A DNA stretch of 64,000 nt from Neoechinorhynchus agilis (lineage: Eukaryota > Animalia > Acanthocephala), in NCBI GenBank assembly GCA_051530055.1, contig JBMGUZ010000006.1, positions 35,635 through 99,634 of the forward strand. The letters run 5' to 3'. Positions 1 through 43,534 of this stretch are shown one piece after another. Every line of letters starts with the position of its first letter. Position 1 is the stretch's first letter. Both the position numbers and the translations under genes were made by a program. Below the pieces are notes generated by a model. That model ran no database searches, was not told where the DNA came from, and saw nothing but the letters and a program-made list of their open reading frames with translations.

Positions 1-626
1 CCTTGCCGAGTACATTCGTGTCTCGGTTTGACAGGCAAGGAAACTGTTTATAATGCTGGTAAGCATTCTTCAGAATGAAAGTCACAAAGAGTTTTGACCA
101 CGTTGTTGAGGCCCGAGGTTTTAATCCACGATGTAGCTGCTTGCTGCGAAGGAACGAATTTTTTCTTAGAGACAACGCGATACCATTGAGAAGAGTTGGG
201 AAGGAGTGATTTGATCCTACCTCTATCCTTGTTCAGTTGGAAACGAGCCCTACAAGGCCAGTGTAATGCTGACCAGAATTTAATTCCTCCCGTAAAGGGA
301 AAAAGCACGCGGGGTTTCATCGAAGCAATTAATTTGCCTAACTATAGTTAGGAGTCTACACCCGGTAAATGAGTATTTATTAAAGACGTTTCGAAGCTCG
401 TCGGGTTCATCATCAGTTTGTTAGTAATAGACGGTTAATCACATTCCCCGGTACCTCACATATCGACATTTTTAAGCTTAGGATGTTCGCCGAGATTCTA
501 CGAGCCTTGCTTCCAATGGCCAGAGGTGTTTGAGCCCAATGTCCCCATTTTTGACACTCCGAGGAATCAGTTTCCCACGTAGTAAAGACTTTAAGAAGAA
601 TAACAGCTTACATCCGAACTTCTCGA
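1..626 (-). mobile_element. Repeat module, probable Penelope-like family C remnant: ORF C-terminus, 3' UTR with hammerhead, then ORF start MKPRVL
   Basis: The same module recurs at ~6540-7350 (+), ~21565-22065 (+), ~34085-35080 (+) and ~42560-43685 (-). The C-terminus KLLFFLKSLLRGKLIPRSVKNGDIGLKHLW loosely resembles PLE GIY-YIG C-termini, and a hammerhead follows about 65 nt after the stop, as in the clearer PLEs of this window. PLE identity is inferred. Confidence 0.4.
378..429 (-). ncRNA. Minimal type I hammerhead ribozyme, family C
   Basis: Minus strand TATTactaacAAA-CTGATGA-T-GAAcccgacgagcTTC-GAAA-CGT-C-TTTAATA: core, short stem II, ACGT palindromic stem III, GUC cleavage triplet, bulged stem I. 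Confidence 0.6.
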
Positions 627-759
627 AAGCGACCCTGTCTTCATTATCTATCTCCGGTGAGAGGTCGGAAACGATGAACGTAGATGTATAGCTTGAATCC
701 GTGTATTGCAGACCAGCATCTTCCTTAAATCTAGTGAGGAAACTCCTGAATTGTTTCCT

Positions 760-1968
760 AAATATATTGGAGATGAAGTGAATTTTCAAAACTCCACCAT
801 TGAGCGAAATTGACTTAATATGATTGTAATCGTCTTTGAGTGATTTGAGCTACGGCACTTCGTAAGCCTTGTTAAGGGATTCCCTGGGTTGAACAGGTAA
901 TCGTCTTATCGAGTTTAATTAATCGTTTGAACATTATTTTCTGGTCGACATGAAAAAATGCAAAAATATTTATTTGGTTTCGATTTGTAGAAGGAACATA
1001 ACGCGTTTTATTAATAATGCGTTCAAATGGGCATAAATTTTTGTTCATTGGTACACTCGAAAGTGTTCGACCGGTTAAGATAATGTATTTTTTTAACAGT
1101 TGAAGAAACAAAGTCAAATGAAACGTTAATGTAATCTTTCTGGCGAAAAGCTAAAGTTATAAAACCTTTTGCGTAAATGCTAGAATTGGTATTTGGAAAT
1201 ATGAATTCATTTCCTTCAGGATGTCGATCCTTCGCGGTCACATTGGCACCTTCAATGTCCATTTTCATACCGAATTGTGGAATTGAAACAAACAGAAATC
1301 TTCATCGATGGATACAAAAATTTTCTTTAATTTTTTTCGTTGCCCTCTGAAGCGTCCTAACGGACACTGTACTCGTCATTGGGCTTTGGCCTGAGGCCGC
1401 AACTTACTGTAAATTGTTTCGAGATAGAAGTGAAAGTTAGAAAGCTGTTTTTCGCAGTGAGAGTTCGTTAGCGAAAATCGATACTCTTTTGATGTTCTTT
1501 GAAAAGTGAGCCTTACCTTAACTCACGGAGAAAAACTTCTTGCGCTCTTCGCTATCTATGATCTCGTCAATAAACACCTTACCTTGAAAGTTGCGATGAA
1601 TCCAACAGAGCTTAAACGACTAAAATTATACTTAATTTTTACCTTTCAATACAAGTATATTTGAATCTTTGCAAAAAACCAAAGGGAATGAAATATAAAA
1701 GTCGTTAAAATAGTCAAGAGTTTCCATCGCAAATTCTACTTAGTATACAACGCCTATGCTTTTTCGAGGCAATAAAAAGAGTTAACGATATTCTTCAGGT
1801 CATTTCAAGCCAATGGTCGTCTTTCAAGGAAAATAACTACAAGACCGCTTTTTAGACATATTGGAATATTTCACAGCGAAACACGAAAGCTTGAAAATCT
1901 TTTTCTACGATCTTTGGACAGCATTTTATTAAAAAACGATAGAGACTTCTTGTTCGAAGAATGAAAGG
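760..1968. repeat. Segment with an inverted copy at ~19220-20660
   Basis: Near-identical ORF translations 1023..1268(-) and 19958..20203(+), and 872..1117(-) and 20109..20303(+). Part of it also recurs at ~5650-6010. Confidence 0.85.
1735..1968 (+). repeat. Dispersed 'hub' repeat module (about 0.4 kb full length), function unknown
   Basis: Sequence tctacttagtatacaacgcc...gaagaatgaaa...ggatgagcaataaaaagc...gtattgcc recurs at 3686-3800, ~19085-19460(-), ~28985-29355(-), 48639-48867, 48868-49100 and ~53955-54170. Confidence 0.85.
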
Positions 1969-2010
1969 ATGTTTGAGATATGGGAATTTGAAGTAAAGAA
2001 TTAATTTATT

Positions 2011-2054
2011 GAATTGAATATTTCGATCCAAACTAGGATCTTCTTCAGCAATTC
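2011..2054 (-). ncRNA. Minimal type I hammerhead ribozyme, family A (3' pLTR)
   Basis: GAATTG-CTGAAGA-A-GATCC tagttt GGATC-GAAA-TAT-T-CAATTC: 6-bp stem I, 5-bp stem II, ATAT palindromic stem III, AUU triplet. Predicted cut between 2017 and 2016. Confidence 0.8.
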
Positions 2055-2086
2055 TAAAAAAGAGAGGCAGGGAATGTCAAAAACTA

Positions 2087-2337
2087 TCACACGTTGATCT
2101 TATCGGGTGGAATCCGAAGCTTCAATCTGTAATCCGGCTTGTTTCCATCAAAAATGGATGACGACTGGATATACACAGCTTCCATGACCACACGACTGAA
2201 TCGATCGTGACTTCGTAATAACACTTGCGTGTTATCAAAATCGATATGATGTCCAGTATTCACAACGTGTGAGACCACTGCAGAACTCAAGTCATTCTTT
2301 CTGTTTATCGATCGCCTGTGCTCCTGAATTCTCCTAT
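2087..2337 (-). pseudogene. PLE GIY-YIG endonuclease C-terminal remnant
   Basis: RRIQEHRRSINRKNDLSSAVVSHVVNTGHHIDFDNTQVLLRSHDRFSRVVMEAVYIQ matches the PLE GIY-YIG pattern R..EH...SA.A.H....GH.IDF...R...EA..I. The GIY/YIG motifs themselves are deleted. Confidence 0.8.
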
Positions 2338-3495
2338 TTAGATCGTTCGTTTGTCCGATCGAAGTCTTGATATGAAATCCTTACCATTATCAATAGTATT
2401 ATCGGAAGATCCCATTATACTACGCAGCATATCTGCTATTTTTCGGGACATATCAGTACAGAATGCCGAGTGGGCAGCCACTATAGGTCGAAACCTAATA
2501 GGGTTTTTGTGTACCTTGGCGAGAAGGTATAGTCTGGGCGTTTTTGCATCAGTAGAGCGAAGTGCTTTATAATCATCAGGAGGAAGCTTCCCTTGATTTT
2601 TCAATCTCAAAATAAATGAGTTGAATTCCCTTTCACGACTTTTTGTTTGGCATGTACTGAGCTGCTCAAACTCATTACCGTTGAGGATTTCAAGGCCTGC
2701 TTCTCGATATTGTTGTGAATTCGTAATACAATATCCATACCCCTTATCGATCTTGACCAAAACTACATCATTGATGTCCCTGAGAAGGTCCATTCCACGC
2801 TGCATTCTCCGGGAGATGTTAGAGTTAACATTCCTATTTTTAATAAATGAATCATAGTACTGTTCTATCTTCCAAGTTGGTATATTCAGATTATCATATT
2901 CGAGTCGCGTTGCAAGTTTCTCTAGCTTGATTCTGTATTCAAACTTCTTAGGTGGCGTATAAGGAATGAAATCGGGACCATAACTAAGTAGCTCCAGTAC
3001 TTCGTCTGGCAGAATAATGTTCGACATATTATATACCTCATTCTTGTGATCAGAAGCAGTATAAAATCTATTCTGGGTCAGTCGATTAAGCTTTCGAATA
3101 TGGCGATTCAAAATACCTTTTTCTTCGATATCCATGTGATCTTTGACACAGAACTCTACAAGTTGGCAATATTCTGAACTTATCCATCTATTGACATTCT
3201 CTATGCAGTTATTATAGGAGATCGAATTGTTTTTGACATTGTTGACCATACATGAAATAGTATTATCAAGCATGCGCTCCATCATGTACTTTTTCCGTAG
3301 CGAATTGTCAAAACCAAGAGCAGGTGATCTTAGATGAAGGAAACTTGGAAAAACACCATAGTTTTTGCAGTCCCTTAAGAAATCAAGAGCCATCAGTGAT
3401 CTCATATTCCTCAGACCAAATTTGTCCAATTCCCTTACCGCTTGAAGAGCAGACTCCCCATATATCTGCTTTATACTGTTGAAGATAAAATCCAT
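2338..3495 (-). CDS. PLE polyprotein N-terminal domain plus the start of RT (385 aa); RT palm missing
   Basis: PLE motifs VYNMSNIILPDEVLELLSYGPDF, VLVKIDKGYGYCI, PRLYLLAKVHKNPIRFRPIV. The ORF ends before the catalytic aspartates and abuts the GIY-YIG remnant. Confidence 0.85.
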   Translation of the reverse strand: MDFIFNSIKQIYGESALQAVRELDKFGLRNMRSLMALDFLRDCKNYGVFPSFLHLRSPALGFDNSLRKKYMMERMLDNTISCMVNNVKNNSISYNNCIENVNRWISSEYCQLVEFCVKDHMDIEEKGILNRHIRKLNRLTQNRFYTASDHKNEVYNMSNIILPDEVLELLSYGPDFIPYTPPKKFEYRIKLEKLATRLEYDNLNIPTWKIEQYYDSFIKNRNVNSNISRRMQRGMDLLRDINDVVLVKIDKGYGYCITNSQQYREAGLEILNGNEFEQLSTCQTKSREREFNSFILRLKNQGKLPPDDYKALRSTDAKTPRLYLLAKVHKNPIRFRPIVAAHSAFCTDMSRKIADMLRSIMGSSDNTIDNGKDFISRLRSDKRTI

Positions 3496-3536
3496 ATGTT
3501 TGAGATATGGGAATTTGAAGAAAGAATTAATTTATT

Positions 3537-3580
3537 GAATTGAATATTTCGATCCAAACTAGGATCTTCTTCAGCAATTC
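3537..3580 (-). ncRNA. Minimal type I hammerhead ribozyme, family A (5' pLTR)
   Basis: Identical core and stems to 2011-2054. Predicted cut between 3543 and 3542, 47 nt upstream of the ORF ATG at 3495. Confidence 0.8.
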
Positions 3581-3804
3581 TAAAAAAGGAGGGGCAGGGA
3601 ATGCCAAAAACTATCACACGTTGATCTTATCGGGTGGAATCCGAAGCTTCAATCTGTAATCCGGCTTGTTTCCATCAAAAATGGAATGGATGAGCAATAA
3701 AAAGCTTTTTCCAAAAATAATATCTGGAAAATATTATTGCTAACATCAAAATTCGCATTCGATGCCCTAAGGTGTTGAATGGAGGTTTCGAGCATCGTTG
3801 TAGG

Positions 3805-4770
3805 ACTTGGCAATGAAAGATTGTATTTTATCAACTTGAATTTTCGGCCTGCTCGCTGGCCTTCTTCAGAATCTAAAATACATTCACACGGTCACTGTTG
3901 AATCTTTTGCCCCCTCGTGAATATATCGGGCGGTACCCGTAGGTTGAGGGTGTAATCGGCCTTATTATGCGTGGATGTGTTTAATTGTTGAATAAAAGTG
4001 GCCTCCATCGCAGTCCTGTCCCTACGGTTTCCGTTCCTCGCAAGGATTTCAGCCCTCTCAAAATTGATCCTATGTCCATTATCTATGATGTGATGAACTA
4101 TTGTCGAGTTCGTATTCGTAATTTTGCTGACTGCTTTTCGATGCTTCGTCAATCGTCTCTTGATATTATATGTTTGTCCGATATAAGATTGATCGCAGTC
4201 TAGGTGTGGGAATTGATCATTTCCTCTTTTTCGGGTCCTAAGAGACTGTTTTGTGTACGCCCTTTTTTGTCCAATATAATTTGCATTCCTTTTTTGTGTC
4301 AAGTCGTTTGATTAGAGATTCCATCTTTGAATTCCAATCCCCATTTATGCATGGGACTACAATGTATCTTTTTTCCTCATTTGCCATTGATTCCCTTGTT
4401 TTAATTAGCCTTGCATCCTTCCTCGCTCTTGCGATGTATTTCTTTGGGTACCCACCTCTTCTGAAGATATTCCATAGTCGATCCGGTTCGTTCTTGAGGG
4501 GTACCATCGTCTGAGCAGTATCGATATGCCCTGATAAATAGCGATCGAGTCTTTGATATCTTGTATTTTTGTGGTTGGGCAGAGATCCAAGGAACAACCT
4601 GATGTGGGCACCTTGTTTAATGGGGAGCACGGTCCCCAACTGAACAAAGAACTTATTGGGATGAACAAGCACATACAATGGACACACGAACAAGAATAAT
4701 GGGTTGCCTTACAATTCCTAGATGTCAACATTAAGATTAACTTGGATGGCACTTTCTGGAGTAATGCCAA
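3805..4770 (-). mobile_element. Penelope-like element family B, 5'-truncated (RT thumb plus GIY-YIG), frameshifted
   Basis: ORFs 4238..4693 (DRLWNIFRRGGYPKKYI; YIVVPCING) and 3892..4302 (DCDQSYIGQTYNIKRRLTKH...HIIDNGHRINFERAEIL...EATFIQ). Confidence 0.85.
3822..3882 (-). ncRNA. Minimal type I hammerhead ribozyme, family B
   Basis: TGTATTTTagaTT-CTGAAGA-A-GGCC agcgagca GGCC-GAAA-ATT-C-AAgttgatAAAATACA: AATT palindromic stem III, UUC triplet, stem I with an internal loop. Starts about 10 nt after the GIY-YIG stop at 3892. Confidence 0.75.
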
Positions 4771-6540: not shown

Positions 6541-7560
6541 TATGTGAGATACCGGGGAATGTGATTAGCCGTCTATTACTAACAAACTGATGATGAACCC
6601 GACGAGCTGAGGTAGAATCAAATAACTCCTCCCAACTCTTCTCAATGGTATCGCGTTGTCTCTAAGAAAAAATTCGTTCCTTCGCAGCAAGCAGCTACAT
6701 TGTGGATTAAAACCTCGGGCCTCAACAACGTGGTCAAAACTCTTTGTGACTTTCATTCTGAAGAATGCTTACCAGCATTATATGCAGTTTCCTTGCCTAT
6801 CAAACCAAGACGCCATGATCTTTAAGCCTTTGATATTGTTCAATTGTGGAGATCAAGGGATAAGATTTTCGATAACGGCTCATCAATATGTTTGAAAGCC
6901 ACGAATGTACTCGACAAGGCCAACATCACCGATATCGCTAAAGCTATGGTCAGTGCGTCTCCGGACGAATGGGCTCATATGAACCTCTCGAAGCGTATTT
7001 TTCTCATCAAAGAGAAAGGAAAAAGGTTGTAGCTGGTGGAGATGGTCGTCTGTTTTACCTAAAAGTTATCTGTGCTCGAAGTTCCACATAATCAAATCAT
7101 CTACCGTGCGAAGATAAACCACTGATTGGGCTTATGCTAAAAGCTTGAGCCATCACGCTCTCGGCCTGAGGCACAGATCCAAATAAGTCGTCGAATTATT
7201 CGAGGAGAAAGTGGGGTATTGAGATGAAATAATCTCGATCGAGACAGTAGACCTGATTGCTCCTTTCAAGCACTTTGATGAAGGATCATTAAGGTCAACG
7301 AAGACGAAATCTACTCCTGAATTCAAAATATTTCTTTAGAGCTCTTTCGTTTGTGGTATATGAAATTTACGAAGCCGGATTTAGATATTGTGGACCGAAA
7401 CGTTCCTTCCACAGTACAAGAACCAAAATAAAAAGCATGGGAAGTCGAAGGAGTCTAATTGGGAGATTAGTCGGGGATTGAAAATTAGTTTGAAAAGCGA
7501 TAAAATTCCATGTGACTATCAGCGACTGAGGGTGTAATAGAAATCCCGAAATGATCTTAT

Positions 7561-7683
7561 AATTACACTTTCGGTGAGAATAAACCCGGTCATTACATGT
7601 TTTATTTATTCGAAATATTTCGCGAGGTATTTTTAGATGACTGAAGAGGCGTGGATACCTCGCGAAATATTTCGGATAAATAA
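7561..7683 (+). repeat. Truncated copy of the 164-bp fold-back hairpin carrying hammerhead family D
   Basis: Left arm complete; the right arm is cut at 7683, where gypsy sequence joins. Full copies lie at 35281-35444 and 42218-42381. Confidence 0.85.
7631..7680 (+). ncRNA. Minimal type I hammerhead ribozyme, family D (one stem II mismatch)
   Basis: CTGAAGA-G-GCGTGG ata CCTCGC-GAAA-TAT-T-TCGGATAAA. Confidence 0.6.
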
Positions 7684-8255
7684 CCTGTGCTCGATGTCCT
7701 CTCGTATGGATGGCCACCAACAATAATACCTTTCTAGGTCTTTCATTGTTGTTATCCCGGGGTGTCCAGTATGTAAGACATCAAGTGCTTTATTCCTCAA
7801 TGCCTGGGCGATTATAAGGCGTTGCAACCATAGGATGACTCCGTCCTCTACTGAAAGCTCTTGTCTGCGAGACGAATATTTATGTAGTTCCGGAGGGGCC
7901 AACCACTCACTAAGTTGAAAAACTGCCGGAGCTGAGCTGATTCCAAATGGCAGTCGTTTGTATCGGAAAAATCCTCGATGGGTCGAGATTGTCAAGTATT
8001 TCCTAGAGTCCGCGTTGGCAGGTAGTTGTAGATAAGCATCTTTCAAATCGAGCCTTGAATACTACTCACCTCCCGCTATTTGGTTGACGATCTCTTCCCA
8101 TGTAGGAATGGCGTAGTTATCGATTGTTAGATGTGGATTAATTGTTACTCTAAAGTCTCCGCATATCCTGATATCACCACTGGTTTCCTTGCAATCACAA
8201 TCGGCGCAGCCCAATCGATAGAGTCTTTACGTAGATCCACTTTCTCCAGCACATC

Positions 8256-8831
8256 TCATTCTAACTGCCTTATCAACTCGTTTTCTACTTTGTTCTTCAA
8301 TGTCAGTGGAATTCTTCGACTTGCACATCTTCTCGGTGTGGCATTGGGTTCTATTGCTAGTGATATTTCGGTATTATTGACAGGAGTATTCGATTCATCG
8401 AAAATCGACTTATTCTTCAATAGTAGCTGATCGATTGAGGTAACGACCGAATCGATATCTGATTCTGTTTGCTGGCTATCAAGCCTGTGGCATACGACAT
8501 CAGGCCAAGGAACTTCGAAAACGTCTATCCAAGGACGCCCAAATAGACTATACTTCCCGTTTCGTACCACCATGACTTCTAACTGCTTTTGTCTTTCTCC
8601 CAAACTCGCATTGATATTGCATTTTCCCAGGGTTACTAACCGTTTGCCACCATACGCCTTGAGGGGTTTGGCAGCATTCAAAGTTGGCTGGCCTATTCTA
8701 CGCCAATATGTCATAGTCAACACCGATACACTGGCACCAGTATCATACTCCATCGTTATTTGTATCCCATTTATTTGGACATCTATTCTTGGAATCTGAT
8801 TCTCCACTATCGTTGTGTGGTTTGCATCCAT
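8256..8831 (-). CDS. Gypsy aspartic protease region
   Basis: IDVQINGIQITMEYDTGASVSVL (DTG active site); SLFGRPWIDVF. Confidence 0.85.
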   Translation of the reverse strand: MDANHTTIVENQIPRIDVQINGIQITMEYDTGASVSVLTMTYWRRIGQPTLNAAKPLKAYGGKRLVTLGKCNINASLGERQKQLEVMVVRNGKYSLFGRPWIDVFEVPWPDVVCHRLDSQQTESDIDSVVTSIDQLLLKNKSIFDESNTPVNNTEISLAIEPNATPRRCASRRIPLTLKNKVENELIRQLE

Positions 8832-8847
8832 TATCTTATTTAGTTCT

Positions 8848-9648
8848 TCAATTTGATCTACTGGGTACCTTGATCGGCAACACGATCTGAAATGACCCGT
8901 CCTTTAGCGTTTGAAACAACTCTTGTTCTTTGCTGGACACTGATATTTCGTGCTCTATTCCACATCTTTTACAGCGTTGTTTAGGTCTTTTCTCCCTCTG
9001 ATCACGTGTATTATGCCGTTTTCGAATCATGTCAATTTCAAAAAACTTTCCGTCTTGCATATATTTTGCTGTGTACGAATCATTCGGAAGTTCTTGACCT
9101 ACATACTGCTTCCTCCACGACGTATTCTTTATCATTTCAAACGTTTCACAAATCTTCATCACGCCGCTCAAAGAAGGTGCTGCCATTTGCAAAATTTTGT
9201 TCCTCGCCTCATCGTGTGGCGTTCCAATCGCTATCTGGTCTCTGATCTGGTCTTCGATCGCATCTTTTTCCGAATTGATGGATTTATTGAAAAATTGACA
9301 CAATCCAGCTTCTTCTCGTAGGTCTACAATCCATGATGCATAAGATTGACCATTTTTCATTTCGTATTGACTAAATGCGAAACGCGCAGCGACGATATGG
9401 ATTGGGCGTGAGTGATGGGTATCCAGCAATTCTATTAATTCATGGTAATCATAATGGTTGACATCTTTTCCCGTATTTAGACTTGACAGTAGTTGGTATG
9501 CCGAGGGCCCAATCCATGATAGGAACATGTTTCTCATCATTAGTCGATCGGTGACATTTTGAGCAGCAAAGTGGAACCCGATTTGTTGTTTGTAGCTTCG
9601 CCGGCTTTCTTTTTCCTCAAGAAAGCGCCGGAATCCCGTTGCTCGCAC
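8848..9648 (-). CDS. gag: Mag-like Gag
   Basis: FLSWIGPSAYQLL...ARFAFSQYEMKNGQSYASWIVDLREEAGLCQF...IRDQIAIG; partial knuckle CKRCGIEH. Confidence 0.8.
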   Translation of the reverse strand: MRATGFRRFLEEKESRRSYKQQIGFHFAAQNVTDRLMMRNMFLSWIGPSAYQLLSSLNTGKDVNHYDYHELIELLDTHHSRPIHIVAARFAFSQYEMKNGQSYASWIVDLREEAGLCQFFNKSINSEKDAIEDQIRDQIAIGTPHDEARNKILQMAAPSLSGVMKICETFEMIKNTSWRKQYVGQELPNDSYTAKYMQDGKFFEIDMIRKRHNTRDQREKRPKQRCKRCGIEHEISVSSKEQELFQTLKDGSFQIVLPIKVPSRSN

Positions 9649-9928
9649 ATTATCCTTCCTGGCAGTCGTGTTCGAATTGGCTAGAGACTCATTTATTTGA
9701 CCATATTTTACAATATTCAGTTCTATTCACTTACATGATATAAATTACATTATCATTAAGTAGAGTGGACAAGTTGCTTAAATTGGTTAGGATACTGCTT
9801 ACTTTAGATTGACTATATTCTTACAGCGTATACTCAAGCTTAAGGCGTAGCTCAAACTTGCTTACGTCCGGAAGCAACTGTTCTAATAATTGTTGCTGTT
9901 ATTGGAGAATTGTTCTTAATAAACCACT

Positions 9929-9938
9929 CTCGTCGCCA
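9929..9938 (-). promoter_or_regulatory. Primer-binding site TGGCGACGAG (copy 1)
   Basis: Follows ...CTACCACA-AC upstream of gag. Matches the 3' end of typical eukaryotic tRNA-Ser(GCU), a primer associated with Mag-type elements. Confidence 0.7.
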
Positions 9939-11451
9939 GTTGTGGTAGCCATACAACAACAACTTGTTTATTATTCGAAGTCCGTCTTCCAACTAGCACA
10001 CGCTATCTATATGTGTGTGGTCCGAATCGATATTCAAAGAGTATAAAGGGCAAAATATTTAATTGGCTGGAAACTGTATTCATCGGAAATGATAGTAAAA
10101 TCCTCATCGGTAAGCTCCGGCGCAACCTGTGTTCGTTATTCAGATCGGCCACAGCCGCTGATCTACAGAACATATTGGCTTGCTTTGACGCAAACTTCCT
10201 TGGTATAAAAGATTTTGTGATGAGATGACTAGAAGAGGCGTCAATTAATATTTTATTGAAAACTTCTCAGGAGACCTTCGAAGATGATGACCGAGTTTTT
10301 GATATGAGATAGATGAAGAGATTAATATATGTTCCGTTTAAATTGATTTTATCCTTGATCTTTATACCATTATATGAGAAACAGATCATGGGTAAAACTT
10401 TCTTTAGGAAAAATCCGTCTAAATAGTAAGTATAATTATGAAAGGATGGGAATTTTGGTAGGTGTAGTAAATGGTTGTTAAAAAGTCCCAAGATATTTGC
10501 TATTAAAGTCTGCAATAATTATATCCGTGTCCCAAAAAGGGGGTTTTCATCTGGGTTTTAATAAAAAAGAGACCTTGCGTGGGTTAATGTAAGCGAATAG
10601 GAGAAGTTGGCAAAGTTTGGAGTTTTTGTTTGAAAGAGTAATTTAGCCTCACGATTTTTGCTTAGAACGGATTGTAACCCTCTTGAGAAATCCAAGCGGT
10701 TTCCATTGGGTGATGAACTAAAATTTAAGAGCAAGGAATCATATTTACTGTTATTGACTAGTAAACATGACCCAGTCTCTTGAAAAAATAAATGATCAGG
10801 ATTTGAGAATGCGAAAAAGGGCAAAAGGAGTCTGGGGAGCGATTGGGACGAAATGCATTGTAAGTGACAAATGAAAAATCTAGATTACTATTGGTTGGGA
10901 AATTATTCATTTTTATGAAGGTTTGCCCTTTTTTTATCAAAAGAGGAGTGTGAGGAGAGATGCCATTTTGACGAGGCTGGATCAGAGCCTTCTTGAGTGG
11001 TTACGCTAAGAATATCAATTGCATCTTTTGGGACTATGCTTTCGTTAAAAGGGAGTCCACATTTTTATGCGGCAGAGAGCTTAGTGAGTTGTTATTTACA
11101 ATGTCAAGTGCTGCCTTATCCCAGGCTATATTCGGGGGAATGAATGTTGCTTTAATCATAGGAGATGAAGGGATGTTTGAGACTTCCTTACTTGTAGAGA
11201 AGGAATCCTTTATTATTCGAAAGTTAGAAAGTGAATTTACAAATAGATTGTGGTTGTTTGGAAGGACATATTCGAACGTAAGCGGGTGATTAGGAGTAAT
11301 TACAGAAGCACGGACGAGAAGGGCGGTGAACAGCCTGTTATTCCCGGTGGTACTCCCGGAATTATGAAAGGATCGATATTGCTTACCTGCTCAATAACCG
11401 GAAGTTTAACACACTCACGCTCACGAGATTGAGCTTCATCATAATGACGAT

Positions 11452-13361: not shown

Positions 13362-13499
13362 TCCAACAGCTCACAAAATAAGGGAGATGCATTGCCGCGT
13401 ATAAGAAGATATTACGATAAATCCTCGAGATTACGCGTGTTTTTTATTTTTCGTAAAGATGAGACATTCGGAATCATGAGGCAAAAGTCATTGAACAAA

Positions 13500-14410
13500 T
13501 TATGGTATTCGGCTACGCTCGGAGGTGATCTCTCCATTGTACTGTGCGATTTGGAGACGCTGATTAGGGAGACCTCGAGAATGGACATAGAGCTCATACT
13601 CCAGAGCAACTCAGCCTCCTGGGTAGTTGCGCATTTGATTCAAATGTGGAAGCTAAGATCGGCCGCATCATACCGAAACTATCGTTGCTGTGTGATAGGG
13701 TCAGCGCTGTCTCCGCTCACGAAGCATTATTTCTGATAAAGAACGCACTCTTTCTCCCGAAATTGTTATTGGCAACAATCTTCAAACATAAAGAAGGATT
13801 GGCCGAGCTCGACGACAAGGTGAGGGCTTGTCTCTAGCGTATTTTAAATGTACAGCTCTCAGATGAGGCGTGGCGACAATCTTCATTGCCTGTGTCATGC
13901 CTTTCTTGGCGAAAAAAATTCTAAGGGAAAAGGTTTTGTCTTGACCAAGAATTTGTGGTGGCAGTTGAGGAATGGTGCCAGCATGCAGGAACTAACCATG
14001 TTCCCGTGAATGGCGTCAGACAGTTGATCTGGGAAAGGCCTTTCGCCGCGAGAACTCACAGCTCTCTACTTTCAGGTTTTCGTGATGGGGTCGTCCGAGC
14101 TCGATTGTCGGCAATTTCGACACGAAAATCGGGGCGTGGTTGGAGGCTGTACCTCTGGCATCCTTGGGAACTCTTCTCACTGATGAGGTAACGAGGATCG
14201 CAGTTTCCTTAAGACTTGGTCTCCCGATGAGCACGCACTATCGCTGTCGATGTGAGTCTTTGGTTGATGCTTTTGGGCGACACGGTTTCGTTTGCCAAAA
14301 GTCAGGAGGAAGGTTCTCACGCCATTCTGAGATCAATAGCGTAATTTCTCCGGCGTCGAGAACGGCGAACTAACCCAACATTTTGGAACCCACCAATCTT
14401 TGTCGACATC
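13500..14410 (+). mobile_element. CRE-like fragment (family A)
   Basis: ATLGGDLSIVLCDLE; HEALFLIKNALFLPKLL; RIAVSLRLGLPMSTHYRCRCESLVDAFGRHGFVCQKSGGRFSRHSEIN. Ends at EPTNL. Confidence 0.8.
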
Positions 14411-20600: not shown

Positions 20601-20689
20601 CAATTTCGCTTAATGGTTTAGTTTTGAAAATTCACTTCATCTCCGATTTATTTAAGAAAAACGTGATACAATTTTATGCAGTTCCCCAG

Positions 20690-23285: not shown

Positions 23286-23355
23286 CGTTTGACAGTACAT
23301 CATGCTTATCAAACATCCTTCGTTTGACAGTACATCATGCTTATCAAACATCCTT
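23286..23355 (+). repeat. 35-bp tandem duplication that frameshifts the R2-like RT
   Basis: cgtttgacagtacatcatgcttatcaaacatcctt occurs twice, at 23286-23320 and 23321-23355. Confidence 0.95.
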
Positions 23356-33800: not shown

Positions 33801-35280
33801 GTTTTGTAACTGTTCGTGAAAATTAAAAAATGTTTTCATATCTGAACAAAATCGGTTTCACATCATTTTTTATACAATCATACAAATATTTGGGAGCACC
33901 GATTTTTATATCGCACCACTTTTCGGTAGCTAATTCTAAATTTGAATTAATGAGAGCGCGTGTACACGAAGTTGCAAACGAGCAGCAGAAGAGAAAATGA
34001 TGAAGTTCCATAGAAGCGATTCTAAAAGAGAGAATTTGCATTGCAAAAGTTATAAAATCACTTTGTAAGTATTGCCATTCGAGGAGAAGTACGGGGCTGT
34101 TATTCTTCTTAAAGCCACGTGGGAAACCGACTCGGAAGGGCTCCTAGAAGCCGGCGAACATCCTAAGCTTAAAAATGATACGGTACGTGATTAGCCGTCT
34201 ACTAACAAACTGATGATGAACTCGACGAGCTCTCGAAACGCCCCAATAAACACCATCTACGCCGGGTGTAGACTCCTAACTATAGTTAGGCAAATTGTTC
34301 GTTTCGCGTTTCCTTTACGGGAGGAATAAATTCCCAACCGGCCCCGTAAGCTGCTCTCCAACTGAACAAGGATAGAGGTAGAATCAAAATCATCTCCCAA
34401 TTTCAATGGGTATTGCTCTCTTCTACAAAAACGGTAGCAGCATCGTGGATTGTCCCGCTCCGTCGCGGTCGCCATTCTGGAGAATGCTTACCAGCATTAT
34501 ATGCAGTTTCCTTGCCTGTCAAGCCAAGACGCCATGATCTTTAAGCCTCTGATATTGTTCAATTGTGGAGATCAAGGGATAAGATTTTCGATAACGGCTC
34601 ATCAATATGTTTGAAAGCCACGAATGTACTCGACAAGGTCAACATCGCCGATATCGCTAAAGCTATGGTCAGTGCGTCTCCTGTCGAATGGGCTATTATG
34701 AACCTCTCGAAGCGTATTTTTCTCATCAAAGAGAAAGGGAAAAAGGTTGTAGCTGGTGGAGATGGTCGTCTGTTTTACCTAAAAGTTATCTGTGCTCGAA
34801 GTTCTACATAATCAAATCATCTGCCGTGCGAAGATAAACCACTGATTGGGTTTATGCTAAAAGCTTGAGCCATCACGCTCTCGGCCTGAGGCACAGATCC
34901 AAATAAGTCGTCGAATTATTCGAGGAGAAAGTGGGGTATTGAGATGAAATAATCTCGATCGAGACAGTAGACCTGATTGCTCCTTTCAAGCACTTTGATG
35001 AAGGATCATTAAGGTCAACGAAGACGAAATCTACTCCTGAATTCAAAATATTTCTTTAGAGCTCTTTCGTTTGTGGTATATGAAATTTACGAAGCCGGAT
35101 TTAGATATTGCGGACCGAAACGTTCCTTCCACAGTACAAGAACCAAAATAAAAAGCATGGGAAGTCGAAGGAGTCTAATTGGGAGATTAGTCGGGGATTG
35201 AAAATTAGTTTGAAAAGCGATAAAATGCCATGTGACTATCAGCGACGTAGGGTGTAATAGAAATCCCGAAATGATCTTAT

Positions 35281-35444
35281 AATTACACTTTCGGTGAGAA
35301 TAATCCCGGTCATTACATATTTTATTTATTCTAAATATTCCGCGAGGTATTTTTAGATGACTGAAGAGGCGAGGATACCTCGCGAAATATTTCGTATAAA
35401 TGAAATATGTAATGACCGGGAATATTCCCACCGAAAGTGTAATT
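35281..35444 (+). repeat. 164-bp fold-back hairpin (70-bp arms, 24-nt loop)
   Basis: aattacactttcggtgagaa...cgcgaggtat / atacctcgcg...ccgaaagtgtaatt. Confidence 0.9.
35351..35400 (+). ncRNA. Minimal type I hammerhead ribozyme, family D
   Basis: CTGAAGA-G-GCGAGG ata CCTCGC-GAAA-TAT-T; predicted cut after 35391. Confidence 0.65.
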
Positions 35445-36099
35445 TTATTATCCCGAAGGACTTTCTATCGATGATCTTATAATGAATTACGAGAGGGAGA
35501 CCGTTTAATGAATAGGCTGACTCTGTTACCCACGCAGCAATGAAGTACTCAATTTTAAAAGCGTGTTGCATATTCGGAAATTCAAGGACCGACGACCACA
35601 TAATCGCCAACAATCAATCCAACCGCCATAAAATTCTGACAATTCGAAGGCTCAGTTCTCAAAGAAAATCTCGACTTAAAACAAGCAGCAAACTGCGTTC
35701 ATATTTATTTATTAACTCATACTGGTTACAATCATTCATTTTCTAAGAACCTCAATTACAATCCTTTTCTACAATTGCTCGAGATTTAGTCGTTATTGCG
35801 CACACTTTTGCGTCTCTGCGCAATTATCAAAACAAAGAATAAGCGCATTTAGCCGTGTTTGGTTTCGAATACTTCCATTTCCTATAAATGGTCCTAAGAT
35901 CAGTTAAGGTAACTCACCGTTTGTGAAGGGGAATACAAATGATTCTAAAAAATGATCAAGGTTTTTCTTAAGAAAGTCTCGGATTATAATTTCTTTAAAA
36001 TTAGTTGAATAAAACTTTGCTTTCATTAGTTGCAGGCACATTTGATTGTGTGAATTAAAAACAAGTTTTGTGAATTTATATTTACAGCTATAATATTAT

Positions 36100-38640
36100 A
36101 TTTTGGATAAAAATAAAATAGTCAGATCTTTATTCAATGCCATATTTGATTCCGCTGATAAGAACTTGATCTTTTTAACAAATCTAAACTTTGTCAATAT
36201 TGGTTGCCAAAATCGCGGTTCAAATTTTGTCAAATTGTACCAAATAAGGGTTTGAAGTTATATTTATCAGTATTCCAATATTTATACCTAAATTTTCAAT
36301 AAGAGTTTAGTTTTGTAAAACATATTTCGAATTTTTCCAATGTCTCAAAAATCGGGTATTCGGAGTCCTACACCTACATTTTTCCAAACGTTTCGGTCTG
36401 ATAGATAATAAGATATTTTTGGATTTATATCCAGACGAGCTTCTCGTAGTTTTCCTCTATTTTCAGTAAGCAACTTTTTAATATCTCCAAGGTTTTCAGA
36501 AATTTCGTTAAAAAAAAGGAAATATCAATTTCAGATCCATTTTTAAGCCTGAAGTTTTTGAATAAAAAAGGCATAGCTACCACAAAAAAGATTGGTGATA
36601 AAGATGAGCCTTGAGGGACTCCATGAACACGATAGAAAATTCTCTTATCCTTATCAAGCTCAAAAAAAGTCCCCCTTTGTCTCTAATAGGATCATAGTAT
36701 GGTAGATAAGTTTTTTAGGCACTTTGACAAATCTTAAAGCCTTATAGATAAAAAAGCGATCAATTTCATCGAACGCTTTCGTTATGTCTAATTGTAGCAA
36801 CACGTTGACATATCGTTGTCTTTCTCTAGATAAATCCATTAATTGTTCCATCAGACTGTGGACACCTCTCTCTGGAACAAAACCGTGCATGAAAGGCGGA
36901 ATTAAATGATTATCTTGAACGAAATCTAAGAGCTTCCATGCCATCGCTCTTTCAATTATGGAAATGAGGGGTTCTTGAATGGAAATGGGCCTCAGTTTCT
37001 TGGCCTGCGTGATCTTTTTGCAAATATTTTTGGGAATCAAAATACGTTTGACCTTATTAATCTCCATTATTTGATAAATTCTCAAATTAAAACATATTTT
37101 CGAAATCATCACAGACTTAACCTCTTCGCTTATTAGTTTAAATATTGTCGGTGGAGGCGAGAACGTATTATGAGCCCATGAGTGACCCACCGACCAGGCG
37201 TTTATAAAATCAGCACCGGTAGAAAAATAATCACTCTCCTCCAAGTTATCGTTAAAATTAATGAGTCTTAAATATGGCGCGGGTCTGATTTCACCCATGG
37301 GGTAGTTTAACATCGATTTAACTGCTTCAGGATAGGAAGGGCACCCTATCCATGAACTTGCTTTGGACTTACAGTCCACAAATTTCTTATTTAAAATTAT
37401 ATTCCACCATTTTTTAGAGAAAGCTGCACATTTCAATAGATTTTTCCTCTCTTTTTTAATATCCTTCCAATAGAAGAGAAGTATTTTTTTAAATACTTGG
37501 GCAATTGAGTGATGTTCGCTTTCTCTAACTTCAATTTCTAATTTAATAAGAAATCCCAAATTGCGATCTTGACGACGCCTAAAGCCTGCGTTTCTAGTTT
37601 GTTTTAAGATCAACTCTGAGCTAAGCAGCACAGCTGATTAAACCTCATCATCAATGAGTCATGATTAACAATTGCGGTAATTCGTTCCAATAAAAATTTA
37701 TTAAAAAACAAAATAGATTTTGTGTTAATTTTATACGCTTTTTCAGAGACTCGGCCAGTGCTTGTGAAGAACAAAGCATCATGACCCAGACGCCAGCTCA
37801 TTCTCATTTGGATTTCCTAGGTGAATAAAGCATTCAAACCTTTACTTACTATTGCTCCATCTATAAAAGAGTGAAATCCTCGCGACCAATTGTGGAACGA
37901 GGGTTCTTGAGAGATAATGGTGGTATAGTTAGATGAGAATAAGCTTCTAAAGGCATTCAAGTAATTATTATTGAAGTCACCAATCATGATATCAGGCTTC
38001 CAAACTTCTAAGAGCTCTTTCATGACCTCTAATGATTTTCTAATGTTACACTTTGGATTGCGGTAGAAATTCACCCAAATTATTTTAAGGCCCGCAATAA
38101 GCTTCCTTATTTAGAAAGGGATTCAGGGATGATATTATCTGAATAACGTGCTCATTCGTATGAATTTCACAGATCATTTTCGCTTGAATATCGTTTCTCA
38201 AAAATGATTGTAAACCACCGGAGTAGTTTTTGCTATTTGATGGGTAGATGGGCTTAGTTAAAGAACATTCATAAATAGGTAAGCTAAATGATGGAAGGGT
38301 CCCTGTTTCTTTTAAAACCCTCCAAACAAATCATTATTGTCCTTTAACATGGATTCTAATTTATCTAAGTTCCTGGATTTTCCAATATTACATGTAAAAA
38401 ACGAACACTATCTGTTTGCATATACCTTCTTGGTCGGTCCTGAATCGGGTTCGGTAGCTTCCAGACTGGGAATAGACAAAGCTCTTTTTAATGCCTCCTC
38501 AACCTTCAACGTCGCCCCCTCCCATTCTAACCTTTTCTAAGGTTTCAATTAAGCTTTTTAAGGAAGTTTTCAATTCCTTACTCTCATTTCCTATTCCTGT
38601 TATTTTTTGAACCTTCAACGCCTCTTTCAAGCTTTTATGG
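36100..38640 (-). mobile_element. APE-RT LINE, left-arm copy (15-nt deletion removes LVYAD)
   Basis: ORFs 37817..38074 and 36660..37631 are identical to the right-arm copy. Confidence 0.8.
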
Positions 38641-38879
38641 GGAACTCAAATCTGCTCTACGAGCATTTTTTGAGAAATATATGCCGGATCCTGTCTCCAT
38701 TATCCCCATTGAACCATAAGGCATACGATATCACATGCGAGGAGGCAAAAAGTATTTGAATTTTTTCATTAACAGTGGCGAGAGTAGGATAATGGAGACA
38801 AGGGATCAGTAAAATATATTTCTCAAAATGCTCGGCAAGAGCCAGATTTGAAGTTCATCAAATTTTGATTTGCTAAAGA

Positions 38880-41430
38880 AAATGAGGGCTTGAAAGAGGC
38901 GTTGAAAGGTTTTCAAAATATTACAAAGGAGCTTGAAGCTATAGGAAATGAGAGTAAGGAATTGAAAACTTCCTTAAAAAGCTTAATTGAAACCTTAGAA
39001 AAGGTTAGAATGGGAGGGGGCGACGTTGAAGGTTGAGGAGGCATTAAAAAGAGCTTTGTCTATTCCCAGTCTGGAAGCTACCGAACCCGATTCAGGACCG
39101 ACCAAGAAGGTATATGCAAACAGATAGTGTTCGTTTTTTACATGTAATATTGGAAAATCCAGGAACTTAGATAAATTAGAATCCATGTTAAAGGACAATA
39201 ATGATTTGTTTGGAGGGTTTTAAAAGAAACAGGGACCCTTCCATCATTTAGCTTACCTATTTATGAATGTTCTTTAACTAAGCCCATCTACCCATCAAAT
39301 AGCAAAAACTACTCCGGTGGTTTACAATCATTTTTGAGAAACGATATTCAAGCGAAAATGATCTGTGAAATTCATACGAATGAGCACGTTATTCAGATAA
39401 TATCATCCCTGAATCCCTTTCTAAATAAGGAAGCTTATTGCGGGCCTTAAAATAATTTGGGTGAATTTCTACCGCAATCCAAAGTGTAACATTAGAAAAT
39501 CATTAGAGGTCATGAAAGAGCTCTTAGAAGTTTGGAAGCCTGATATCATGATTGGTGACTTCAATAATAATTACTTGAATGCCTTTAGAAGCTTATTCTC
39601 ATCTAACTATACCACCATTATCTCTCAAGAACCCTCGTTCCACAATTGGTCGCGAGGATTTCACTCTTTTATAGATGGAGCAATAGTAAGTAAAGGTTTG
39701 AATGCTTTATTCACCTAGGAAATCCAAATGAGAATGAGCTGGCGTCTGGGTCATGATGCTTTGTTCTTCACAAGCACTGGCCGAGTCTCTGAAAAAGCGT
39801 ATAAAATTAACACAAAATCTATTTTGTTTTTTAATAAATTTTTATTGGAACGAATTACCGCAATTGTTAATCATGACTCATTGATGATGAGGTTTAATCA
39901 GCTGTGCTGCTTAGCTCAGAGTTGATCTTAAAACAAACTAGAAACGCAGGCTTTAGGCGTCGTCAAGATCGCAATTTGGGATTTCTTATTAAATTAGAAA
40001 TTGAAGTTAGAGAAAGCGAACATCACTCAATTGCCCAAGTATTTAAAAAAATACTTCTCTTCTATTGGAAGGATATTAAAAAAGAGAGGAAAAATCTATT
40101 GAAATGTGCAGCTTTCTCTAAAAAATGGTGGAATATAATTTTAAATAAGAAATTTGTGGACTGTAAGTCCAAAGCAAGTTCATGGATAGGGTGCCCTTCC
40201 TATCCTGAAGCAGTTAAATCGATGTTAAACTACCCCATGGGTGAAATCAGACCCGCGCCATATTTAAGACTCATTAATTTTAACGATAACTTGGAGGAGA
40301 GTGATTATTTTTCTACCGGTGCTGATTTTATAAACGCCTGGTCGGTGGGTCACTCATGGGCTCATAATACGTTCTCGCCTCCACCGACAATATTTAAACT
40401 AATAAGCGAAGAGGTTAAGTCTGTGATGATTTCGAAAATATGTTTTAATTTGAGAATTTATCAAATAATGGAGATTAATAAGGTCAAACGTATTTTGATT
40501 CCCAAAAATATTTGCAAAAAGATCACGCAGGCCAAGAAACTGAGGCCCATTTCCATTCAAGAACCCCTCATTTCCATAATTGAAAGAGCGATGGCATGGA
40601 AGCTCTTAGATTTCGTTCAAGATAATCATTTAATTCCGCCTTTCATGCACGGTTTTGTTCCAGAGAGAGGTGTCCACAGTCTGATGGAACAATTAATGGA
40701 TTTATCTAGAGAAAGACAACGATATGTCAACGTGTTGCTACAATTAGACATAACGAAAGCGTTCGATGAAATTGATCGCTTTTTTATCTATAAGGCTTTA
40801 AGATTTGTCAAAGTGCCTAAAAAACTTATCTACCATACTATGATCCTATTAGAGACAAAGGGGGACTTTTTTTGAGCTTGATAAGGATAAGAGAATTTTC
40901 TATCGTGTTCATGGAGTCCCTCAAGGCTCATCTTTATCACCAATCTTTTTTGTGGTAGCTATGCCTTTTTTATTCAAAAACTTCAGGCTTAAAAATGGAT
41001 CTGAAATTTTAGTTTACGCGGATGATATTTCCTTTTTTTATCAGAGAGGTTTCTGAGAAATATCCCAGAGGCAATTAAAAGTTGCTTGCAGAAAATAGGA
41101 AAACTACTGGGGAAAGCTCATCTGGATATAAATCTCCAAAAATGTCTTATTATCCCTAACAACCAGACCAGAGCAACTAATCTTGGAACTTCAACACTTT
41201 TATCTAATTTTAGAGAGTTGCCGAAAGTTTCGAAAAATAGCAAGTTATTAGTATTCCAGGTCCCGTTATTTGGATACCCCAGGTACGAGTTGTTAAGGAT
41301 TCGAAATATGTTTTATAAAGCTAAACTCATATTGAAAAGGGGGAAGCGTTTAGGTATAAATGATAAAATGGTGATAAATATAACTAAAACCCTTATTTTT
41401 GGTACAATTTGTTTTTTATAAGAGGCAGAC
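38880..41430 (+). mobile_element. Divergent APE-RT LINE, right-arm copy, broken by stops and frameshifts
   Basis: Coiled-coil ORF1-like stretch (ENEGLKEALKGFQNITKELEAIG); APE motifs IMIGDFNN and SFIDGAIVS; RT motifs LRPISIQEP, HGFVPERG, LDITKAFD, GVPQGSSLSP, YADD at 41015-41026, LDINLQKC. Confidence 0.85.
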
Positions 41431-42217
41431 CACCAGAACAACGACTAATGATGTTTTTTTAAATCTTCCCGGTTGTTAAAAAGATCAAGTTCTTATCAGT
41501 GGAATCAAATAAGGCATTGAATAAAGATCTGGCGATTTTCCTTTTATCCAAAATATAATATTATAGCAGCTGTAAATACAAATTCGCAAAACTTGTTTTT
41601 AATTCACACAATCAAATGTGCCTGCAACTAATGAAAGCAAAGTTTTATTCAACTAATTTTAAAGAAATTATAATCCGAGAATTTCTTAAGAAAAACCTTG
41701 ATCATTTTTTAGAATCATTTGTATTCCCCTTCACAAACGGTGAGTTACCTTAACTGATCTTAGGACCATTTATAGGAAATGGAAGTATTCGAAACCAAAA
41801 ACGGCTAAATGCGCTTATTCTTTGTTTTGATAATTGCGCAGAGACACAAAACTGTGCGCAATAACGACTAAATCTCAAGCAATTGTACAAAAGGATTGTA
41901 ATGGAGGTTCTTAGAAAATGAATGACTGTAACCAGTATGAGTTAATAAATAAATAAAAAATGAACGCAGTTTGCTGCTTGTTTTAAGTCGAGATTTTCTT
42001 ACAGAACTGAGCCTTCGAATTGTCAGAATTTTATGGCGGTTGCATTGATTGTTGGCGATTATGTGGTCGTCGGTCCTTGAATTTCCGAATATGCAATACG
42101 CTTTTCAAATTGAGTATTTCATTTTTGCGTGGGTAACAGCGTCAGCCTATTCATTAAACGATCTCCCTCTTGTAATTCATTATAAGATCATCGATAGAAA
42201 GTCCTTCGGGATAATAA

Positions 42218-42381
42218 AATTACACTTTCGGTGGGAATAATCCCGGTCATTACATATTTTATTTATCCGAAATATTTCGCGAGGTATCCTCGCCTCTTCA
42301 GTCATCTAAAAATACCTCGCGGAATATTTCGAATAAATAAAATATGTAATGACCGGGATTATTCTCACCGAAAGTGTAATT
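42218..42381 (-). repeat. 164-bp fold-back hairpin, cleanest copy (67/70 arm matches)
   Basis: Arms 42218-42287 and 42312-42381, loop 42288-42311. Confidence 0.9.
42262..42311 (-). ncRNA. Minimal type I hammerhead ribozyme, family D
   Basis: TTTTAGATGA-CTGAAGA-G-GCGAGG ata CCTCGC-GAAA-TAT-T-TCGGATAAA: 6-bp stem II, ATAT palindrome, stem I with tandem G-A pairs. Confidence 0.7.
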
Positions 42382-43482
42382 ATAAGATCATTTCGGGATT
42401 TCTGTTACACCCTCAGTCGCTGATGATGGTTGAATGGAATTTTATCCCTTTTCAAACTAATTTTCAATCCCGACTAATCTCCCAATTAGCCTCCTTCTAC
42501 TTCCCATGCTTTTTCTTTTGGTTCTTGTACTGTGGAAGGAACGTTTTGGTCAGCAATATCTAAATTCGGCTTCGTAAAGTTCATATACCACAAACGAAAG
42601 AGCTCTAAAGAAATATTTTGAATTCAGGAGTAAATTTCGTCGACCTTAATGATCCTTCATCAAAGTCTTTGAAAGGAGTAATCAGGTCTACTGACTTGAT
42701 CGATATTATTTCATCGCATTACCCCACCTTCTCCTCGAATAATTCGACGACTTATTTTGATCTGTGCCTCAGGCCGAGAGCGTGATGGCTCACGCTTTTG
42801 GCATAAACCCAATCAGTGGTTTATCTTCGCACGGAAGATGATTTGATTATGTGGAACTTCGAGCACCACCAACTTTTAGGTAAAAGACGACCATCTCCAC
42901 CAGCTACAACCTTTTTCCCTTTCTCTTTGATGAGAAAAATACGCTTCGAGAGGTTCATAATAGCCCATTCGACAGGAGACGCACTGACCATAGCTTTAGC
43001 GATATCGGCGATGTTGACCTTGTCGAGTACATTCGTGGCTTTCAAACATATTGATGAGCCGTTATCGAAAATCTTATCCCTTGATCTCCACAATTGAACA
43101 ATATCAGAGGCTTAAAGATCATGGCGTCTTGGCTTGACAGGCAAGGAAACTGCATATAATGCTGGTAAGCATTCTCCAGAATGAAAGTCACAAAGAGTTT
43201 TGACCACGTTGTTGAGGCCCGAGGTTTTAATCCACGATGTAGCTGCTTGCTGCGAAGGAACGAATTTTTTCTTAGAGGCAACGCGATACCATTGAGAAGA
43301 GTTGGGAGGAGTGATTTGATTCTACCTCTATCCTTGTTCAGTTGGAAACGAGCTCTACAAGGCCAGTGTAATGCTGACCAGAATTTAATTCCTCCCGTAA
43401 AGGGAAAGAGCACGCGGGGTTTCATCGAAGCAATTAATTTGCCTAACTATAGTTAGGAGTCTACACCCGGTAAATGAGTATT

Positions 43483-43534
43483 TATTAAAGACGTTTCGAA
43501 GCTCGTCGGGTTCATCATCAGTTTGTTAGTAATA
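43483..43534 (-). ncRNA. Minimal type I hammerhead ribozyme, family C
   Basis: Same sequence as 378-429. Confidence 0.6.

Follow-up and report, generated by a model that had tools for sequence, protein, structure and literature searches.

Candidate minimal hammerhead ribozymes of the Penelope-like kind in relic retroelements of the acanthocephalan Neoechinorhynchus agilis

Minimal type I hammerhead ribozymes (min-HHRs) were defined in the Penelope-like elements (PLEs) of metazoans by Cervera & De la Pena in 2014, together with the proposal that they act as dimers; their detection relied on a relaxed RNAmotif descriptor and not on Rfam models (PMC4209133). Canonical PLEs (Penelope/Poseidon, Neptune and Nematis) encode a C-terminal GIY-YIG endonuclease, form partial tandems with pseudo-long terminal repeats (pseudo-LTRs) and carry a hammerhead near the 3′ end; strong 5′ truncation and inverted 5′-truncated partner copies are documented for their insertions, and some PLE clades are without HHRs (PMC8557442). 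Animal non-LTR retrozymes, which are built of tandem repeats with type I hammerheads, give rise to circular RNAs, and their derivation from PLE pseudo-LTRs has been proposed (PMC7229834; bioRxiv 10.64898/2026.07.22.740005). Here we analyse nine hammerhead motifs, in four families (A to D), within 64,000 nucleotides of Neoechinorhynchus agilis DNA (GCA_051530055.1, contig JBMGUZ010000006.1, positions 35,635 to 99,634; hereafter the window, in whose own coordinates positions are given), a transposon-rich eukaryotic stretch of ~39% G+C with nested and duplicated repeats. Judged from sequence, it is likely that all nine are minimal type I hammerheads located in the 3′-terminal region of canonical, endonuclease-encoding PLEs. 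We found no specific report of PLE min-HHRs in an acanthocephalan, and the paper describing the N. agilis genome is silent on both Penelope and hammerheads.

Both strands of the window were scanned with a descriptor (CTGANGA, zero or one unpaired nucleotide, a helix II no shorter than 3 bp, GAA, a palindrome of 4 or 6 nt with the form A..T, and H) built independently of the site list of an earlier sequence-only reading of this DNA. The scan returned exactly nine sites, two of family A, one of B, three of C and three of D, which is the set already listed by that reading. In 200 dinucleotide-preserving shuffles the mean expectation was 0.08 matches per window, falling to 0.005 once helix I of at least 3 bp was demanded as well, and nine sites are far beyond chance even if treated as four independent families. 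The catalytic core (C3 U4 G5 A6 N7 G8 A9 / G12 A13 A14 A15.1 / U16.1 H17) is exact in all nine, each of which also has a 1-nt bulge between A9 and G10.1, the absence of a bulge having been permitted. Helix I measures 6 bp in A; elsewhere (B, C and D) it has 2–4 bp, with interrupted extensions. The stems, palindromes and cleavage triplets previously quoted for the four families all proved correct on re-reading, and the 5′-OH ends predicted at 3542, 2016, 3837 and 42270 (minus strand) and 21689 (plus strand) agree with a count from the core; the D helix II, given as GCGAGG/CCTCGC for three sites, stands except at 7638, where an A-to-T change breaks the fourth pair. No further family appeared in the window when one core mismatch was tolerated and helix II was set to 4 bp or more, and the U3-A8 core variant had no match there. 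A site inside an integrase open reading frame (ORF; 53720-53763, minus strand) combines CUGAUGA, a 12-bp stem and GAA, and was dropped because position 15.1 is C; we do not regard it as a hammerhead.

The proposed assignment to the minimal type I hammerheads of PLEs is borne out, in that all the hallmarks published for metazoan PLE min-HHRs are present (PMC4209133): type I topology, a CUGANGA..GAAA..UH core, the unpaired nucleotide between A9 and G10.1, the G10.1-C11.1 pair, a short helix I, and a helix III that lacks a loop and has a palindromic 15.2-16.2, implying a dimer. The presence of several families per genome, the location in pseudo-LTRs and the many solo or opposite-strand copies are likewise shared with the published cases. 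On these sequence features, the motifs are real minimal type I hammerhead sequences of the PLE kind, a known class and not a new architecture. Rfam Hammerhead_1 (RF00163) has the catalytic core in common with them, and helices I and II come in the same order, but the motifs lack a helix III hairpin, and like the hammerheads of animal non-LTR retrozymes (PMC7229834; bioRxiv 10.64898/2026.07.22.740005) they are of a type I that requires a second copy nearby. Helix II is 3–7 bp long here, unlike in the Schistosoma min-HHR families, where it has 7–8 bp. The A/B/D lineage also differs from the published cases in a conserved UUUUAGA 5′ flank that is able to lengthen helix I by pairing with the AUAAA-rich 3′ flank.

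For comparison we used four further N. agilis assembly loci (L028-L031, 83 kb), which have repeats in common with the window (identity as high as 100% over 52 bp, 96% in a stretch of 93 bp and 94% in one of 126 bp). These loci contain 11 more good min-HHRs, every one with a bulge of one nucleotide; they include hammerheads of a ~410-bp tandem array in L029 (see below), a head-to-head pair in L028 (17184/17271), three copies of D-like type, an A-like copy whose helix II is GUCC/GGAC, and another whose helix II reaches 7 bp. A pattern scan of metagenomes for A/B/D-type motifs gave 25 matches, 22 of them chance (helix II of 0–2 bp); the other three (two independent, on insect-like contigs) resemble real hammerheads and have no PLE ORF nearby. 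The insect-like contigs, from host-associated metagenomes (L005:3218-3257 and L006:3690-3732), show the 5′ flank UUUUAGA..CUGAAGA as in A, B and D, together with a 6-nt quasi-palindrome in helix III (AUAUGU) and the cleavage triplet GUC.

The four families had been described as unrelated, and this description does not hold: A, B and D have a common 5′ flank (TTTTAGA-N2-4-CTGAAGA), all four have an AUAAA-type stretch 7–12 nt past the predicted cleavage site, and the endonucleases linked to A and B are homologous (37–40% amino-acid identity, tblastn E about 1e-19 to 1e-21). In our reading of the sequences, the UUUUAGA and AUAAA flanks can extend helix I past an internal mismatch. The AAUAAA/AUAAA hexamer itself, seen in A (2000-2016), C (21689-21705), D (35392-35410) and several copies in the other N. 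agilis loci, may simply be the A-rich 3′ strand of this extended helix I.

Because the families are diverged relatives, comparing them is meaningful. Fifteen distinct hammerheads, drawn from both the window and the N. agilis loci without requiring a palindrome and trimmed of their loops, were placed in a fixed-length alignment of 40 columns, which was used in place of a general covariance model since MAFFT misplaces the bulge column in D. Standard pairs make up 83% of cells, as against 59% in column shuffles and 19–43% with slid partners, and 10 of 12 pairs show changes on both sides, with compensatory changes in all three helices. In helix II, 96.7% of cells are paired, CG, GC, AU and UA all occur at 10.2-11.2, three of four pairs change on both sides and G10.1-C11.1 is present in 15 of 15 sequences, figures that are partly circular, as the first three helix II pairs were imposed by the descriptor. 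The fourth helix II pair, helix I and the palindrome were not so imposed. The palindromic helix III does covary, as previously claimed: 15.2-16.2 is UA in nine sequences, AU in five and CG in one, complementary in all 15, with AUAU, AAUU and ACGU as the palindromes seen. Lastly, the three proximal pairs of helix I are formed in 80–93% of sequences, with compensatory changes, and the distal pairs in 40–73%.

The sequence-only reading had further posited at least four PLE lineages, a link that is shown for A and B, well supported for D and drawn for C by analogy only. Element A (1972-3690, minus strand) is inserted in a repeat, here called X, whose uninterrupted copies at 53962-54128, 19291-19124 and 29188-29022 bound the insertion. 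Its upstream unit (3690-3499), truncated at the 5′ end, forms the pseudo-LTR, and its second unit (3498-1972) carries an internal deletion; the two are joined at CTCAAA|CATATG, 3 nt ahead of the ORF's ATG, and the element has a 190-bp direct repeat (1969-2158 = 3496-3685, 98% identity). The upstream pseudo-LTR carries hammerhead A at 3537-3580 (minus strand; GAAUUG / CUGAAGA / A / GAUCC-UAGUUU-GGAUC / GAA / AUAU / U^ / CAAUUC, the caret marking cleavage), with a 5′-OH product predicted from 3542; the minimum-free-energy fold of the monomer is exactly helices I and II. An identical copy lies in the downstream pseudo-LTR (2011-2054, minus strand; product predicted from 2016), and the element ends at 1972, 45 nt past this second cleavage site. 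A third fragment of the element's 3′ end (49102-49156, minus strand) begins at GAAAUAUU.. within the hammerhead and meets X at the same junction, and is therefore a segmental duplicate.

Two coding regions remain in element A. The 385-aa ORF (2338-3495, minus strand) comprises the N-terminal region up to what we read as the first reverse-transcriptase motifs (..AKVHKNPIRFRPIV..), where the internal deletion cuts it. It had no Pfam match (RVT_1 included), no database match and nothing meaningful in PDB, and neither an exact-protein record nor a match by word-indexed protein search was found for it; over 100 aa, one part of it shares 43% identity with translated L031 sequence. The C-terminal half of a GIY-YIG endonuclease follows (2090-2344, minus strand; ..MEAVYIQ..LRIPPDKINV*), with its stop codon 33 nt upstream of helix I of hammerhead A. 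When the six-frame translation of the window was searched with an endonuclease profile hidden Markov model (HMM), this region scored E=1.5e-44, and only A and B were matched, with nothing near C or D. From its layout, element A is a partial-tandem, pseudo-LTR PLE structure with the reverse transcriptase core deleted.

Element B (3803-4757, minus strand) is a 5′-truncated 3′ fragment of a PLE that ends ~35 nt past the cleavage site of its hammerhead. A linker ORF (4693-4238) and a GIY-YIG endonuclease ORF (4302-3892), with one frameshift between them, are followed by hammerhead B (3836-3871, minus strand; CUGAAGA / A / GGCC-AGCGAGCA-GGCC / GAA / AAUU / C^), which begins about 20 nt past the stop codon of the 136-aa endonuclease ORF and has a 5′-OH product predicted from 3837. 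This ORF contains ..SYIGQT..R..H.., falls just under the cut-off for Pfam GIY-YIG (E=0.0048) and is most similar in PDB to T4 endonuclease II (E=0.068). The stitched linker-plus-endonuclease had no match by word-indexed protein search, and an exhaustive HMMER search gave 440 relatives of the endonuclease, the three best being N. agilis proteins. We scanned ten of the relatives for domains, nine long ones and the top match, P0062. RVT_1 lies N-terminal to the matched region in all nine long relatives, and the matched region itself passes the Pfam GIY-YIG cut-off in four of the nine as well as in P0062; in domain order this layout is that of canonical PLEs, a reverse transcriptase with a C-terminal endonuclease. 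In both elements, the hammerhead is placed where PLE hammerheads lie, 25–45 nt downstream of the endonuclease stop codon, and the reverse transcriptase core is gone from both, by deletion in A and by truncation in B.

Family D has no endonuclease match near it in the window. Hammerhead D (35357-35395, plus strand; AUGA / CUGAAGA / G / GCGAGG-AUA-CCUCGC / GAA / AUAU / U^ / UCGU) sits centrally in a 170-bp imperfect palindrome, in a unit (35284-35473, plus strand) where an inverted, shorter and more severely 5′-truncated copy (35284-35349) is joined head-to-head to a direct, 5′-truncated copy bearing the hammerhead (35350-35473). The 13-mer ATGATCTTATAAT stands on either side of this unit (35271-35283 and 35471-35483). 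It could be asked whether D is instead a foldback or miniature inverted-repeat (MITE-type) DNA transposon, a palindrome of 170–190 bp with a target-site duplication and an incidental hammerhead-like loop; the palindrome bordered by a 13-bp direct repeat would fit this, as would a similar palindrome bordered by TAAATGATC in L028. We consider a foldback origin highly improbable, given that the junction between the arms varies among independent copies, that the 5′ flank UAUUUUUAGAUGA is the same as in hammerheads behind PLE endonuclease ORFs, that inverted 5′-truncated partners are a documented signature of PLE insertion (PMC8557442), and that L030 has a solo, non-palindromic D-type copy (2589-2714) with an endonuclease C-terminal remnant upstream (..FSLKLPASD.., L030 2580-3060). 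Independent copies in L030 also have the same 3′ end, ..CTTTCTATCGATG, with differing arm junctions. In D, the extent of 5′ truncation thus varies among copies that agree in their 3′ end, an inverted 5′-truncated partner is present and the L030 copy supplies a coding link, and because of the endonuclease remnant, the varying junctions and the inverted partner we read it as a truncated PLE 3′ end. The suggestion that D marks a new element without an ORF is therefore replaced by that of a severely 5′-truncated, head-to-head PLE insertion. The reverse transcriptase ORFs at 36660-37631 (minus strand) and 39904-40875 (plus strand) were rejected as a host for D; they belong to copies of a long interspersed nuclear element (LINE) with AP-endonuclease and reverse transcriptase, in orientation opposite to the D hammerheads.

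A second D copy (42268-42304, minus strand) lies in a unit at 42189-42378 whose identical flanking 13-mers identify it as a duplicate of the same insertion. The third (7638-7674, plus strand) has a defective helix II (GCGUGG against CCUCGC), and a gypsy-like insertion interrupts its unit at 7681/7682. All three have the same flanks and so probably descend from one insertion. Since the D copies are flanked by the same 13-mers and the C copies are colinear downstream, each family probably goes back to one ancestral insertion that was later duplicated, and not to several independent events.

All copies in the window are relics or non-autonomous, each lying in a deleted, truncated or mutated element: A is tandem but internally deleted, B is 5′-truncated, D is a 190-bp inverted pair and C lies within a duplicated composite repeat. 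There is no intact element here, unlike in the canonical PLEs (PMC8557442), which these copies otherwise resemble in the C-terminal GIY-YIG endonuclease, the partial-tandem pseudo-LTR and the hammerhead near the 3′ end, as well as in strong 5′ truncation with inverted partners; the insertion signature described there is matched by D and C, whose copies vary at the 5′ end, agree at the 3′ end and form inverted pairs. A PLE inserts as a partial tandem, such that the 3′ end including the hammerhead is repeated upstream of the ORF as a pseudo-LTR, and very short 5′-truncated copies, frequently in head-to-head pairs, are common by-products. Following the literature, a transcript across two units would bear two hammerheads, each of which alone would fold helices I and II; with a loopless 4-nt palindrome after GAA, helix III could form only by pairing with the palindrome of the second hammerhead. 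The dimer would then cleave after H17, giving a unit-length RNA that starts 35–82 nt before the 3′ end of the DNA unit.

Several points weigh against placing all nine motifs as hammerheads of canonical PLEs. First, the Rfam hammerhead models gave no match at gathering score or at E<=10, either in the whole window or in a 421-nt slice, misses that may be due to the absent helix III hairpin, and the pairing of helix II is in part built into the descriptor, as noted above. Second, published PLE min-HHRs cleave poorly in vitro, dimers included (PMC4209133). In Anolis, HHR mutations were without effect on PLE insertion in vitro and no RNA-seq reads ended at the PLE cleavage site. These reports also favour the view that the motifs are true homologues of PLE hammerheads whose working role is not self-cleavage, serving instead as a protein-binding or priming structure or persisting as passengers that ‘parasitise’ PLEs, a parasitism idea already raised for PLEs (PMC8557442); Naiad PLEs proliferate without HHRs (PMC8557442). 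Consistent with it, in L030 and L031 the PLE endonuclease ORFs have ..UUUUUAGAU.. and hammerheads in decay behind them, the core being mutated even behind ORFs that appear open: G5A (CUAAAGA) at L030:10700-10760, and U4C (CCGAAGA) with a collapsed helix II at L031:10800-10850. Set against this, the invariant positions are exactly those of the catalytic core (C3, U4, G5, A6, G8, A9, G12-A14 and A15.1, in 15 of 15 sequences), and the helices covary around it as selection for catalysis predicts, though the sequences were chosen for that core. On balance we think a role other than cleavage unlikely.

The remaining adverse points concern family C. Hammerhead C (21654-21691, plus strand; AAA / CUGAUGA / U / GAA-CCCGAUGAGC-UUC / GAA / ACGU / C^ / UUU) has a 5′-OH product predicted from 21689, and two other intact copies lie at 382-419 and 43487-43524, both on the minus strand. 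Its helices I and II have only 3 bp each, the weakest of the four families, and its hammerhead fold differs from its minimum-free-energy fold. There is no PLE ORF near it, tblastn and the endonuclease profile HMM found no endonuclease remnant near it in the window, and all three C relatives in the other N. agilis loci have core mutations. Helix II GAA/UUC is unchanged across all relatives and so offers no covariation, and one such match per window has a chance probability of ~0.005–0.08. Taken together, this is what would be seen if C were not a ribozyme at all but a chance hammerhead-like string within an unrelated repeat. Such an accident seems quite improbable to us: the bulged nucleotide, G10.1-C11.1, a perfect ACGU palindrome and the GUC triplet are all present, the N. 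agilis relatives retain GAUGAUGAA..UUCGAAACGU, and these relatives end in common ~39 nt past the cleavage site, with variable 5′ ends and one head-to-head pair, as in A, B and D. This analogy makes the link of C to PLEs an indirect one.

The two damaged C copies were rightly placed by the sequence-only reading, starting at 6587 and 34210. The first (6587-6608, plus strand) has a 170-bp deletion inside helix II that removed everything 3′ of the helix II loop, and the second (34210-34242, plus strand) is a copy ~70% identical to the others, in which the 3′ strand of helix II has gained a C and U16.1 has become C (ACGU to ACGC); both have lost the core. C copies run colinearly into the same downstream sequence, and hammerheads C and D, separated by 1.15 kb, point the same way in one composite repeat that is present five times in the window. 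Between the copies at 34096-35750 and 43678-41907, identity is ~70% over the first ~560 nt, which includes hammerhead C, and 92–100% thereafter, a mosaic that suggests gene conversion or a chimeric origin.

In L029 (N. agilis CM121342.1), positions ~9000-14950 are occupied by a tandem array of ~15 units with a ~410-bp period, each unit having a GIY-YIG endonuclease domain and then a B-like hammerhead; the assembly annotates the array as three separate ‘genes’. With one hammerhead per unit, this array resembles retrozymes (PMC7229834; bioRxiv 10.64898/2026.07.22.740005), but its units still encode an endonuclease domain, unlike retrozymes, which are described as non-coding. No retrozyme-type tandem array of hammerhead units occurs in the window. 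A more novel reading, which we think rather unlikely, is that C belongs to a hammerhead-bearing retroelement lineage other than canonical endonuclease-encoding PLEs (for example, a non-autonomous or endonuclease-less one with an unusually small ribozyme) and, separately, that the ~410-bp arrays yield circular, still-coding RNAs. Were the latter so, ~410-bp endonuclease-plus-hammerhead arrays processed to circular coding RNAs would be an intermediate between PLEs and retrozymes.

These observations leave current understanding unchanged, since the architecture, the PLE link and the dimer model have been in print since 2014. They extend the hosts of PLE min-HHRs to an acanthocephalan genome, with several co-resident families that show clean compensatory changes in all three helices. 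The loci span the range of PLE insertion products, including a partial tandem, an internal deletion, 5′ truncations, head-to-head pairs and, at a related locus, the 410-bp array, and could be useful material for the question of what role PLE hammerheads play.

The window contains further repeats in addition to those described above. A large inverted duplication spans 34152-43612, with inner arms (36527-38594 and 38941-41008) that are 100% complementary, lie 346 nt apart and carry a LINE (AP-endonuclease and reverse transcriptase fragments); either a recently formed palindrome or an artefact of the assembly could account for it. The gypsy-like element (protease, reverse transcriptase and integrase) is present as inverted copies at 7682-11446 and 49615-53379, 99% complementary, and its best protein relatives are from Pomphorhynchus laevis (44–60% identity); a 65%-identical gypsy stretch is all that P. 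laevis contigs have in common with the window. A non-LTR retrotransposon at 23087-25180 (RVT_1, E=4e-29) has a C-terminal Cys/His motif and ..KPDAILVD..K.., resembling a restriction-enzyme-like (R2-type) endonuclease, and 11331-13418, the only short satellite in the window, is a tandem of at least 12 units with a period of 147–151 bp and without hammerheads. Lastly, an ORF of 281 aa without a Pfam match occurs three times (16843-17688, 27747-28592 and 55565-56410) in a ~2-kb repeat, to which stretches of L030 are 69–78% identical at the DNA level.

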